Source: Cyanophora paradoxa CCMP329
Taxonomy: Eukaryota; Plantae; Glaucophyta
Length of the DNA: 64,000 bases
Assembly: GCA_004431415.1 (NCBI GenBank)
Contig: QPMI01000145.1
Location: 73,875-137,874, forward strand
Direction: 5' to 3'
Positions 49,017-64,000 of this stretch are shown here, in pieces. Numbering within the stretch: position 1 is the stretch's first letter; the number at the start of each line of letters is the position of its first letter. The translations under genes and the position numbers were made by a program. A model generated the notes under the pieces. The model was not told where the DNA came from and searched no databases. It saw nothing but the letters and a program-made list of their open reading frames with translations.

Positions 49017-52000
49017 CTAGGCCACGGAGCAGGTCTTTGGGCCGCCGCGGCCGCCGCCGCCGGCCTCGGCGGCGGCGCGGAGCTCGTCGGCCCGCCGGCG
49101 CGCCCGCGCGAGGCGCCCCCGCTGCTCCGCCACCGCCCGCTCCAGCGCCTCCGCCTCCCCGCCCCCGCCGCCGCCCCTGCGCCGGCCCCGGCGCCCGCGC
49201 CGGGGCGCGCGGGGGCCGCCCTCTGCTGGGACGGGCCCGGGGTCGACCAGGGCGGAATCGGGCCAGGCGTGAAAAAGGGGCGCGTGCACCTGGGCGGACG
49301 CGGGGCGCGCGGCGGTGGCTGCGGCTGCAGCCAGGCCCGGCAGCGACTCGAGCAGCGCGTCGAGGTTCTGCGCCCAGCCCCGCCCCGCCCCGGCGCCGGC
49401 GTCAGGGCGGACGGCTGCGGGCGGAGAAGACGGAAGAGATGCGAGAGAGCGGGGCGGGCCGACAGGAGGGCGACGTTGCCCTTGGTGACGTAGACGTAGG
49501 GCCCGGCCTCGGGGAAGAGGCCCTCCAGGAGCCCCTCCGGCGCCTGCGGCCGCGGGCCGGGGCCCGAGGGCGGAGGCCACTCAGGCAAGGCCGCAGCTGG
49601 CGCAGCGACGGATCGCGGCTGCGTGGACCGCGCGCGCGCGCCTGGAGGTCGGAGACCATGACGGGCTTCAGGGGGCGCTTGTTCAGCTCCGCCAGCTACG
49701 AGCGAGCGAGGGCGTGAGGGGGGTACAGGAGCCGCGGGGGGTACGGGTCGCGCCTGGAGGCGGTCGCGGAGGAGCGGGTCGGCGAGAGCGGCGGTGGAAA
49801 GGAGGGGCAGGAAGGCCGCGCACTGTACCCCCGTACGCCGCGTCAGGCGGCGCGAAGCGGGGCGCGGCCACGGGGCGCGCGGGGCCGGGCGGGAGCAGAC
49901 CTTCACGACCGCCCGGGCGCCCTCGTCGCCGGCCGGGGCGGCGCCGGCGGATTGTGGGCGCTGGGCGCCCCGCCGGAGCACTCGAGCCAGCAGCGGCGGC
50001 CGCGGTGGGCCAGGCCCCGCACGAACTGGCCCGCAAACGCCGCGTCCTGACCCGGCGCGCCGTCTCGATCAGAGGTGGAAGCCCGCAGCGGGCTCTGCGG
50101 GGCGCGGACCGCGGCGTGGCACCAGACGAAGAGGAATGGCTCCGCCTCGTCGACGGCGCAGCGGGCGCCGGGCGTCGCGAGCAGCGCCGCCGCCGCCTGC
50201 GCCAGCGCCTCCTGCCCGCGGCGCCGGCCCCGCCGGCCCCGCCCGTCGCCAGCCGCTGGGTCAGCGTGAGGGCGAAGGGCGGCAGTCCCGCAGCGAAGAG
50301 GGCGTCCCTGCGGGCGGGCGGGCGGGCGGGCGGCGTTGTAAAGTAGGCGGGGCGCCCCGGGCCGCCGCCCCAGGACCGCGCGCGGCGTACGTGGAGAGGT
50401 CCCTAAAGCCTCCCCGAGTCAGCCTGGCAGGGGCGGGCGGGAGAAGGCGGGGGAGGCTAGGGGCCGGGAGGAGGCGGACGCGAACTGCTGCTTCATCAGC
50501 GCCCCCTGCGCGCCCCGCCGAGTCGGGTGACCAAGAGGGGGGGGGGGAGGAGGGGTAGACGGACCTGCAGCTGGTCGTCCAGTGCGCACTTCTCGCGCCA
50601 GACGGGGTACACGGGCCTCCCCAGGCGCCGCGCGGCCGCCAGCTGCGCCCGGCACCGCGCCGAGGCCGCCCCCGCGGCGCTGCGCGCGGGGCGGGCGTGA
50701 GCGGCCGCCGGGTACCCCCCTGAAGCTCAAGACGGGTACCTGACGACGAAGATAAGGGCCTGCGCCCTGCGGAGGCCCGCCGCCTCCTGCGCGGCTGTGC
50801 GCGTCGGCCGGCGGCGAGCACGCGAGCGAGCGGGCCGCGCCGCACGCACGTCGGCCTCGCCGGCGTCGTCCAGCGCGCACTGCGGGGGCGGCCGGCCGGG
50901 GGCGGGCGGGCGGGCGCTCAGCGACCGCTCCCGGGTCCGCGCAAAGCTGCGCGGGGCACGCGTGCAAGCGGCGGGGCGCACGGTGACGTGGGCTGCCTCG
51001 AGGCCCTCGAGAAGCCGCCGCGCAAAGGCCGCGTCCTCCCCCGCGTGCCTGCGGAGATGAGGGCGGCTCGCCGAGCGAGGGGAAAAGAGAGGGAGGCGAG
51101 GCGAGGGAGGGGGGTGCGCACGCGACAAACGCGTCGCGGATGCCGCCCGCGCGCTTCAGCGCCGCCTGCGGTCGCGGCGGGCGCGAGGGGCTCGAGCCCG
51201 CGGGAGTCTCAGGGGGGTACGGCGAACCTGGAAGGTGACGTCGGGATGGGCCTGCACGACCATCCTGCGGCGAAAACGATTCAGGGGGGGTACAGGGGCG
51301 CGGGCCGGGGTCGCTCGCTTTCGGTTGGGTCCTTCACCGACAGTCCGCGCCGGGTCCGCCCCTGCAGAGTCCCGTCAGGGGAAAGGGTGGAGTAGGGGGG
51401 GTAGGAGAGGATTAGGCCTGCCCCGCTGCATGAGGAGGAGGCAGGCGTCGAGCATCGCGGGGCCCTGGCTGGCTGCATGGAAGAGGGGCGTGCGGCCCTC
51501 GCCGTCCGGAGTGCTGCAGCCCGCCCCGGCCCGCCGCCTCAGCAGCGCGGGGCGGGCTTGCGGGGCGGACGCGCGCGGCGAGGCGCACTCGAGGGCGCCC
51601 TTGGGGGCGGCCGCCGCGAGGCGCAGCGCCGTGATGCGGAAGCCGTGCCTGCGCGCGCCGCGGCCTCAGGATCAGGGCTGGTTGGCTGCCGGGGGGGAGG
51701 GGGAGGGAGGGTGGGGGGGGCGGGGCGGGGCGGGGGCGAGCCGCGCGGCGCACCGGCAGGCGGCGTGCAGGGCCGACTCCGATTCATCGTCATCGTCGTC
51801 CTCATCATCATCGTCGTCGTCCTCCCCGCCGTCGTCGTCCGCGTACCTGTTCAGGTGGTGGCGCACACGAGGTGCGCGCATTTAGGTGCACGCGAGAGAA
51901 CGGGGGCCGCCCCCGCTTCTAGAAAGGGAGCTCGCCTTGCTAGCGCCTCCGCCCCGCCCCGCTCTTAGCTTGGGACCTAGCTCCCCCAGCCCTATCCTAC

Positions 52001-62000: not shown

Positions 62001-64000
62001 AAGAAAGAGGAGGCGGACGACCGGCGGCGGCGGCGGCGGCTGCGGCAGCGGACGCGGCGGACGGGGAGACGCCGCTGCACGCCGCGTGCCGCGCCGGCCT
62101 GCGCCTCACCGCCCTCCGCCTCGCCCGCGCCGCAACCCCCGACGCCGTCGAGTGCGCCGCCCGCCTCCCGCCCGCCCGCCCGCCCGACCACGCCCGCGCC
62201 GACGCCGGCGCAGAGCGGCGGACGCGGCGAACGAAACGGCCCTGTCTCGCGCCGTCGCCTTCGGTCCGGCCCTCCTCGACGTCTGCGCCCTCCTCCTCCA
62301 GAAGGGCCCGCCCCGCTCTGCCCGCCCCGCCCCGCCCAGCAGGCCTGGCTCGAGCGAGCGAGCGGCCCGCGCGCGCCGCGCAGGGGCGGACCTCGGGCGG
62401 AAGATCGGGGGCGCCCAAGGCGGGCAGCAGCGGTGCGCGGCGCCCCTCGCCGTTAACGTTTCGGGATCGAACGATCGTTTCGGGATCGAACGATCGTTTC
62501 GGGATCGAACGAACGTTTCGGGATCGAACGATCGTTTCGGGATCGAACGAACGGCTGAAGCGGCGGCGGCGGCAGGGCGGTGCTGGACTGCACGATGGAC
62601 ACTGCGTTCCGCGCTCAGCTGAAGCGCGCCGCCGCCGCCCGCGACGCCTTCATCTCGTGCGCCCCCGCCCTCGCCGCCCCGCCCCCTTTAGCTTCCGGGC
62701 CCCGCCTGAAGCCCGGAGAGGTACGGCCACCACCCGCCGGAGGTGGCCGCCTTCACTGCGCGGCTGCGGGACCGCCTGCAGGCGGGGGGCGTCTCCGTGC
62801 GCGCCCCGGGCCCCGCCGCCCGCCACTCCCCGTCGCCTCGCTCACCCACGACCCCGCTCCCGCCCCCGCAGTGCTGGGTTCGACGCGCCGCCTCGGCCCC
62901 GCTTCGCCGCTTCGCGCGCGTCTCACGCGCCCGCAGATGGACGAGATGAAAGCGACCGGAATCGAGGCCGGCACCGAGGCACGCGCACACACACACACGC
63001 CGCTGCCGCTGCCGCCCCTCGAGCGCGCCCCGAGCCCGGCCCCTCGCGCAGTGGCGGGAGCAGATCGGGGCGGGCATCCGGGCGGCCCGCGCCGTCCTCT
63101 TCGTCGCCTCCAAGGCGGGCGCCGCGCCCGCCCGGCCCCGCCCGCCCCCTCCTCTCTCCCCTAGGCCTCTAACGTGGCGCCGCCCGCAGCACTCGTGCGC
63201 GTCGGACTGGTGCATGCTCGAGCTCTCCCGCGCCCGCGGTGCGTGGTCCGTGCGCCGCCGCGGGGCCGGCCCCGCGCCGAGCGGGGCGGGCGGGCTGGGC
63301 GCAGACCTGGGCCGCCCAATCTTCCCCGTGTGGGCCGAGGCGCCCTTCCCCCTCGACGACCGCTCCGCCGTGCGTGCGTGTACCCCTCCCCGCCGCCCCT
63401 CCTCACCGTACCCCCCGCAGGGCCTCCTCCGCGGCTGCCGCTTCGTCGACCTCTCCTCGTGCGCACCCCCCGGCCCGCCCGGCGCTCAGGCCGCCTGCCT
63501 GCGCTCAGGCGAGGGCCGCCCCGGCGCAGGCCGCCGCTGCTCGAGGCGGGCTTCTCCGCCTTCCTCGCGGCCGTGCGGGGCGCCGTCGAGGCCGCCGCCG
63601 CCGCCGCCGCCGCCGAGGATGCCGACCCCGCCCGGGCCCGCCCCTTTCCCCTTACCTCTCCCGCTCTTCTGTCCCTCTCTGAGCCGCCCGCCCGCAGGCG
63701 CTGCTGGGGCGGCCGGACGCGCGCTGCGACCCGCGGGCCGGCCCCTTCCTCTTCGTGTGGGCCCTGCCCGAGGACGCCCCACACGCCGCCTCGCTCCTCT
63801 CCGCCCTCGCCTTCCGCGGCGTACCCTGCTGGCTCGACATCCCCGTCCGCCCCGCCCCCCACCCGCCCTCCCGCCCTCCCGCCGCCGGCCCGCGACGCTC
63901 CCGCAGGGTGCCGGCCCGGCGTCGGAGGCGGCGGGGGCGGAGGCGACGCTCTCCGCCTGCGCGGCCTGCGTACCCCTCCTCTCGGCGGCCTCCGTCTCCT
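56009..64000 (+). CDS. Ankyrin-repeat TIR-TIR protein with an intact TIR catalytic Glu; runs off the window
   Basis: ANK motifs (ALHEAARAGH, GMTPLLKAAACGH, PPLHVAAAEG, VTPLLLAAQHG, GRTPLLVAV, GETPLHAAC). TIR1: RDAFISYGH..FTARLRDRLQAGGVSCW..DE..IEAGTEWREQIGAGIRAARAVLFVASKHSCASDWCMLELSRAR..LGRPIFPVW..RFVDLS. TIR2 starts PFLFVWA..LAFRGVPCWLD. Confidence 0.85.
62455..62552. repeat. Intronic 19-bp tandem repeat (cgtttcgggatcgaacgaW) x5
   Basis: Directly visible; lies between the exon ending GGQQR and the acceptor before AVLDCTM. Confidence 0.9.

Follow-up and report, generated by a model that had tools for sequence, protein, structure and literature searches.

Head-to-head ankyrin-TIR genes of Cyanophora paradoxa: a catalytic-type TIR domain and a transcribed neighbor without the catalytic residues

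NAD+-cleaving TIR domains are an immune tool common to bacteria, plants, and animals, and the restraint of TIR domains by inactive TIR partners has been worked out only recently, for the paired TIR-NLRs (receptors that join a TIR domain to a nucleotide-binding domain and leucine-rich repeats) of plants. Signaling by the RPS4/RRS1 pair depends on the catalytic Glu and the BB-loop of RPS4, both of which are missing from the TIRs of RRS1 and RRS1-like proteins; in every Arabidopsis pair of TIR-NLRs examined, the Glu or the Asp of the BB-loop is missing from the sensor TIR, whereas the executor retains both (PMC13732033). We have analyzed a 64,000-nucleotide (nt) window of contig QPMI01000145.1 (positions 73,875 to 137,874) of the glaucophyte alga Cyanophora paradoxa CCMP329, in which two divergent genes, named here the plus and minus genes after their strands, each encode an ankyrin array followed by a TIR domain (TIR1) and a second, TIR-like domain (TIR2). 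TIR1 of the plus gene is of the catalytic type, and the minus gene is expressed and correctly spliced and has a TIR1 from which the catalytic residues are absent. We hold this description of the locus as one live and one dead ankyrin-TIR gene (gene structures, domains, residue states, and family) with high confidence.

A likeness to the sensor/executor pairs of plants had been drawn in the original prediction, made from the DNA letters alone, and the comparison is apt, given the absence of the catalytic Glu, or of the Asp in the BB-loop, from the sensor TIRs of Arabidopsis pairs (PMC13732033). As in pairs of the RRS1/RPS4 type (PDB 4c6t), the Cyanophora genes lie head to head and one TIR has the Glu and the BB-loop whereas the other is without them. 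However, no NB-ARC domain was found by Pfam in the public model of the plus gene or in six paralogues scanned, which agrees with the prediction that the system is independent of NLRs; the pair has neither leucine-rich repeats nor an integrated decoy, with ankyrin arrays in place of the former; and the proteins differ further in their tandem of TIR and pseudo-TIR and in the coiled coil and C-terminal CaaX box borne by the minus protein and by paralogues of full length. We liken the Cyanophora pair to the plant pairs by analogy and not as a member of their family, to which its proteins, having no NB-ARC domain, do not belong.

The TIR1 domain of live family members resembles TIRs that act as NAD+ hydrolases (NADases), such as AbTIR (8g83), PdTIR (3h16), RUN1, and RPV1 (Pfam TIR_2, PF13676), in sequence, in predicted fold, and in the presence of a Trp-x3-Glu motif, but it is set in a eukaryotic ankyrin protein of 1,100 to 1,800 amino acids (aa) and is followed by a duplicated, TIR-like domain that bears Arg. 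Public proteins of the family are referred to here by short handles; for TIR1 of P0155, the closest match in sequence was the NAD(+) hydrolase AbTIR (E 4e-5), followed by PdTIR, RPV1, AT1G72930, and RUN1; the WxxxE motif of AbTIR (kdWtnyEl) has its Trp and Glu opposite those of P0155. An AlphaFold2 model of the TIR1-TIR2 region of P0155 (predicted local distance difference test [pLDDT] score of 64) matched the TIRs of RUN1, SARM1, RPV1, and RPS4 at E values of 7e-6 to 1e-4. A model of TIR2 only (pLDDT of 53) matched the TIRs of SARM1, SPARTA, and ThsB at 3e-3 to 2e-2, among other flavodoxin-like folds, and the TIR2 profile gave nothing significant against PDB sequences; the homology of TIR2 to TIR domains emerges from profile alignment, described below, and the predicted fold lends it weak support. 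SARM1 (ARM-SAM-TIR) offers a second parallel, in that a helical-repeat regulatory or sensor region precedes a NADase-type TIR and SARM1 TIRs are among the top matches to the predicted structures; the Cyanophora proteins nevertheless have ankyrin instead of ARM repeats, no SAM oligomerization domains, tandem TIRs, and a predicted lipid anchor. Matches of TIR1 to the defense TIR models of PADLOC were modest (PDC-S66, 1.5e-9; ThsB, 1.3e-5), and the locus does not have the composition of a Thoeris system, since the match to ThsB is weak and no ThsA-like gene is present in the pair.

It had been predicted that the locus holds two ankyrin-TIR-TIR paralogues head to head, about 140 bp apart, sharing intron positions in TIR1 and differing in that only one has a catalytic-type TIR1. 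The arrangement was recovered for both genes, with the reservation that TIR2 of the plus gene is only partly visible, as the window ends inside it. The two start codons (minus ATG, 55868-55866; plus ATG, 56024) are 155 bp apart, or 140 bp apart if the plus gene uses an in-frame ATG at 56009, five codons upstream of the public start. Both TIR1 domains are interrupted after DAFV(A)/DAFI(S) (minus intron 51049-51121, from RNA joints; plus intron 62657-62720, from the public model) and again after HVT/GVS (minus, 50880-50981; plus, 62797-62871). The motif SDWCMLEL occupies plus-strand positions 63202 to 63225 and SARCRAQL minus-strand positions 50640 to 50663, with the GAG codon for Glu and the CAG codon for Gln exactly where they had been placed (Table 1), and the LLRDRLQ motif of the minus TIR2 was likewise found on the minus strand, at 49754 to 49774. 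The division into one catalytic-type TIR1 and one without the Glu thus stands at the level of sequence. With the catalytic Glu, the Trp four residues before it, and the BB-loop all retained, the plus TIR1 has what is expected of a NADase-competent TIR, and the plus gene is, as judged by its residues, an ordinary live member of the family. The minus TIR1, on the other hand, has Gln for Glu and Arg for Trp in the S-x-W-C-x-x-E-L motif and is shorter by 3 residues behind the first strand and by 10 in the BB-loop segment (GIEAGTEWRE in other members); lacking the Glu and an intact BB-loop, it would not qualify as NADase competent.

The kinship of the minus TIR region with the TIR domains of the family shows after splicing. 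A TIR match after splicing had been named beforehand as the result to be looked for, and against family hidden Markov models (HMMs) built from six public paralogues, whose TIR1 passes Pfam TIR_2 at 65 to 83 bits, the spliced minus TIR1 scored 74 bits (best of 2000 shuffles, 10.8) and the spliced TIR2 scored 105 bits (best of 2000 shuffles, 11.8). An exon-by-exon Pfam search, with single exons only as queries, gave no TIR match for the minus TIR exons and a single weak one for the plus TIR exons (TIR_2, E 0.045, at 62950-63450 on the plus strand), and a tblastx comparison of the plus gene with the minus gene was swamped by GC-rich low-complexity matches. The G+C content of the window is 72 to 79% in this region, and short introns are abundant.

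The structure of the minus gene was read from contigs of sequencing runs X1, X4, and X5, which on 49001-55000 are spliced and of RNA type; the contigs of a further run, X8, are collinear genomic DNA. Eleven introns were resolved exactly, nine of them GT-AG and two GC-AG (51265-51318 and 51362-51421), and the joined RNA-supported exons form one open frame from the last ankyrin repeats into TIR1 (...IRDAFVAHAGED...SARCRAQL...PVYPVWREK...). The RNA contigs that cover the Gln codon are identical to the genomic sequence there. Downstream of TIR1, the RNA contigs contain one additional base behind 49967 in all three runs and behind 50214 in two runs. Both positions are in runs of C, and both insertions, modeled as N, are required for the frame to pass through TIR2 (PFLFVW...RCWLEC...CAAFLPLLS...LLRDRLQ) and a coiled-coil-like tail to CSVA and the stop codon. 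Because the frame is continuous only with these two insertions seen in RNA, we regard the minus gene as intact and the assembly as in error, with 1-bp homopolymer deletions probably present at both positions; the frameshifts in the assembly may explain the absence of a public model of the minus gene from our search results. Within TIR2, the joints 50046|50110 and 49822|49901 are given by RNA and the junctions at 50307, 49754, and 49695 (GC donors) by deduction; in all, four junctions (50465|50307, 49754|49695, 49642|49543, and 49460|49367) were placed solely by reading frame and the rules for splice sites. The model leaves out several ankyrin exons and the 5' exons above 54827, and the start at 55868 (MGASFGS...) is putative. 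An enumeration of splice-site chains for the remaining ankyrin exons yielded hundreds of chains that were open to the same degree, as stop codons are scarce in GC-rich DNA, and the 5' exons were not resolved by tblastn with paralogues. Pfam searches of stop-free stretches of the minus strand nevertheless detected Ank_3 (4.1e-9, at 54563-54838), Ank (5.6e-9), and Ank_4 (1.3e-5), and motifs of the ankyrin type extend over approximately 55560 to 52830 on the minus strand and approximately 56490 to 62090 on the plus strand.

Several smaller observations attach to the minus gene. Near the Gln codon, the only RNA variants are at 50631 and 50637 in run X4, both in third codon positions just past the SARCRAQL motif; they reflect an allele, a difference between strains, or a copy that is nearly identical, and the contigs of X1 and X5 end nearby. 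One RNA-supported junction, a 63-nt in-frame gap at 52692-52754, has no canonical dinucleotides at any equivalent cut. The putative start MGASFGS, with Gly at position 2, is a possible N-myristoylation-type start.

The plus gene corresponds to a public model, the EukProt protein P0002, which was retrieved by an HMMER search of a library of 1.84 billion proteins with the longest ankyrin exon (58674-59147) as the query. This protein, which the database lists as a product of the window, maps to the plus strand residue for residue in 38 exactly matching blocks and comprises an ankyrin array (Ank_2 at 2.5e-71), TIR1 (TIR_2, 51.9 bits against a cutoff of 28, E 1.3e-13), and the N-terminal part of TIR2. 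Since P0002 stops within TIR2 at the last full codon of the window (...VPLLSAASVS), the contig probably ends at the window end (64000) and cuts the plus gene inside this domain; the remainder of TIR2 and, if present, the coiled coil and the CaaX box lie beyond the assembled sequence. Between 0.38 and 0.42 of the sampled words of 54001-64000 are contained in the RNA-type runs, a fraction that fits, indirectly, the transcription of the plus-gene exons.

The public model of the plus gene includes a 6-nt micro-exon, TGCTGG (Cys-Trp), at 62872-62877, with introns of 75 and 59 nt on its two sides; its inclusion restores the CW(M/L)D strand that is conserved in the family, and the public models P0048, P0152, and P0153 read through the introns that flank it. 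A 75-nt in-frame Pro-rich segment at 63115-63189 is coding in P0002, has a similar counterpart in P0048, is absent from the other six paralogues aligned, and is probably an unrecognized GC-AG intron with the donor GCGGGC.

Table 1. Positions, in the window, of the two ankyrin-TIR genes and their parts
Feature	Position	Strand	Exons or basis
Minus gene (ankyrin array, TIR1 without catalytic residues, pseudo-TIR TIR2, coiled coil, CaaX)	49017-55868	-	Spliced RNA-type contigs, open joined frame
Ankyrin exons of minus gene	51422-55740	-	RNA-supported pieces and Pfam Ank matches on stop-free stretches
Ankyrin pieces of minus gene	54598-54827, 54098-54246, 53337-53526, 53114-53256, 52755-52888	-	RNA
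Further ankyrin pieces of minus gene	52544-52691, 52165-52318, 51589-51648, 51422-51513	-	RNA
Minus TIR1	50565-51165	-	Exons 51122-51165, 50982-51048, 50850-50879, 50740-50786, 50565-50679; all four introns are RNA joints
Gln codon (CAG) at catalytic Glu position of SARCRAQL	50643-50645	-	Genomic sequence
Minus TIR2 (pseudo-TIR)	49642-50307	-	Exons 50110-50307, 49901-50046, 49754-49822, 49642-49695
Arg at Glu-equivalent position of minus TIR2 (LLRDRLQ)	49760-49762	-
Last exon of minus gene (Arg/Gly-rich stretch, coiled-coil-like segment, CaaX)	49017-49367	-	One open frame
CaaX box (CSVA) of minus gene	49020-49031	-	Followed by stop TAG, 49017-49019
Spacer between start codons	55869-56023		155 bp, G+C below that of flanks
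Plus gene (P0002, 1444 aa)	56024-63999	+	Exact mapping of public EukProt model
Plus TIR1	62577-63369	+	Exons 62577-62656, 62721-62796, 62872-62877, 62937-62978, 63052-63114, 63190-63238, 63305-63369
Catalytic-type Glu codon (GAG) of SDWCMLEL	63220-63222	+	Sequence motif
Start of plus TIR2 (PFLFVW ... CWLD ... VPLLS)	63698-63999	+	Ends before Glu-equivalent position

Both genes belong to a family of at least 10 genes, all from Cyanophora. A search with the TIR1-TIR2 region of P0034 returned nine proteins, all from C. paradoxa and all with Ank and TIR_2 domains, under EukProt names (EP00741, with tig... gene identifiers); members such as tig00000158_g10181, tig00021178_g19210, and tig00020564_g11412 share an architecture of ankyrin array, TIR, pseudo-TIR, and CaaX box, and full-length paralogues end in a coiled coil and then a CaaX box (CALM or CSLM). 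Like the CSVA of the minus gene, these tetrapeptides have the form of a C-terminal Cys-aliphatic-aliphatic-X and are predicted to direct lipid anchoring. SDWCM[L/R]EL occurs in TIR1 of nine of nine public members, so that all nine retrieved keep the Glu, unlike the minus gene, the only Glu-less member examined. The position opposite this Glu in TIR2 tells a different story: the original prediction had implied that the Arg of LLRDRLQ is a mark of the minus gene, but Arg is invariant there in the six live paralogues aligned as well as in the minus gene, and this residue was discarded as a sign of a pseudo-enzyme gene. Aligned with hhalign, the family profiles of TIR1 and TIR2 match with a probability of 95% (E 4.1e-8), with the Arg opposite the Glu, and by its sequence TIR2 is an old internal duplicate that would be noncatalytic throughout the family.

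Patterns of conservation set the minus gene apart from the other members. Among live members, TIR1 is 57 to 94% identical (87 to 94% between the plus gene and P0034 and P0151) and the ankyrin arrays are 34 to 60% identical, a pattern of a conserved putative signaling domain on a variable sensor or diversifying repeat array. TIR1 is always more conserved than TIR2 in live members (59 to 87% versus 41 to 66%), whereas conservation of TIR1 does not exceed that of TIR2 in the minus gene (38 to 46% versus 36 to 50%); the loss of this advantage indicates that constraint on the minus TIR1 has been relaxed or has changed. The minus TIR2 shows about the degree of conservation seen for TIR2 when distant live members are compared. 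A maximum-likelihood tree places the plus gene in the main clade with P0034 and P0151 and the minus gene beside P0155 on a branch of 1.15 (median, 0.3). The minus TIR1 begins H-A-G-E-D, resembling bacterial TIRs (AbTIR, HASED), whereas all live members have YGHHPPEV, which argues for an old split from them. Because the two genes fall in different branches of the family, they are not the products of a recent inverted duplication, and a simple inverted duplication with decay was rejected on the strength of the tree and the intact spliced frame.

The explanation that we consider, on balance, probable is that these are two real divergent genes of the ankyrin-TIR family and that the dead one is a working noncatalytic partner. 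The family layout combines a variable ankyrin array, a NAD+-hydrolase-type TIR1, an Arg-bearing TIR2, a coiled coil, and a CaaX lipid-anchor signal. Live proteins would cleave NAD+ once their ankyrin arrays are engaged and the proteins cluster at a membrane; the minus protein would associate with live members of the family through TIR, TIR2, or coiled-coil surfaces, as a noncatalytic regulator, adaptor, or sensor. The plus gene is a plausible partner of the minus protein because both share the 155-bp spacer, a candidate bidirectional promoter; functional pairing of the minus gene with this neighbor in particular is a tentative proposal, and we would sooner doubt it than assume it. Several points weigh against the explanation as a whole. 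The plus and minus genes are not each other's closest relatives and may be neighbors only incidentally. One contig carries the gene models of the live members P0152 and P0153 (tig00021116_g18416 and g18418), whose numbering suggests that genes of the family also lie near one another where no live/dead division exists. Confidence in the structure models is middling to low, and no relatives outside Cyanophora were found, in a search limited by shared words and protein length.

The first two of these points also favor the account that comes closest to competing with a working partnership: the genes may be independent neighbors, two members of a locally expanding family that came to lie head to head, with the minus protein working alone, for example as a scaffold. 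Nonenzymatic animal TIR adaptors are an example of scaffold TIRs. The account of independent neighbors sits poorly with the short head-to-head spacer, which favors coregulation, and in its joint loss of the Glu and the BB-loop the minus TIR1 is like the TIRs of sensors in the paired TIR-NLRs of plants; we regard independence as possible but unlikely. A working noncatalytic partner can also be given a more specific role. The original interpretation is partly supported, its well-founded component being the contrast in sequence between one catalytic-type and one dead gene; the two-component immune module that it proposed is an attractive hypothesis. In its fullest form, the locus would represent sensor/executor TIR pairs without NLRs, in which a membrane-anchored dead protein holds a coexpressed live NADase in an inactive hetero-oligomer until an ankyrin ligand frees NAD+ cleavage, leading to defense or cell death; such Cyanophora pairs would be the counterpart of pairs of the RRS1/RPS4 type, one that arose by convergence or is very old. 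This scenario, drawn by analogy, is speculative, and we think it rather improbable as a complete account.

Much less credit attaches to the idea that the family has no connection with immunity or cell death and conducts membrane-bound NAD+ or nucleotide signaling in normal physiology, with the dead member as a regulatory isoform. TIR NADases do have nonimmune roles as well, an example being SARM1 in axon biology, and a fixed site at the membrane is suggested by the coiled coil and CaaX box; however, a family of 10 or more genes in which the ankyrin arrays diverge fast and the TIR is conserved bears the usual signature of receptor diversification in immune families, and TIR1 weakly matches the bacterial defense models PDC-S66 and ThsB. 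It is least credible that the minus gene is a decaying, still-transcribed pseudogene from an old duplication, its TIR1 losses being decay: the long branch, the missing catalytic residues and BB-loop segment, and the two frameshifts in the TIR2 exons of the window sequence would fit, but both frameshifts are missing from the RNA contigs and fall in C runs as assembly errors, no stop interrupts the frame between the last ankyrin repeats and the CaaX box, with TIR1, TIR2, and the coiled coil inside it, splicing at GT-AG or GC-AG sites removes 11 introns or more, TIR2 retains its 105-bit match to the family HMM, and the observed variants are on third codon positions.

If a working live/dead partnership is true, the pairing of live and dead TIRs would be a more general solution than the plant examples indicate: in this glaucophyte pair, both losses, of the Glu and of the BB-loop, are in one partner, and they are carried on ankyrin arrays and putative lipid anchors instead of an NLR core. 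The two genes would then provide a simple two-gene test system, and the locus adds to the small number of leads to cell-autonomous immunity in glaucophytes; no account of ankyrin-TIR genes in Cyanophora was found in the literature searched. Repair is needed in the public models of both genes, on account of homopolymer errors in the minus gene and the contig end in the plus gene, and models built on the present assembly will carry frameshifts in the minus TIR2 exons. Elsewhere in the family, the model P0154 (tig00021571_g22378) is fused to a pyrroline-5-carboxylate reductase (F420_oxidored and P5CR_dimer), most likely through the merger of two neighboring genes by the gene caller.

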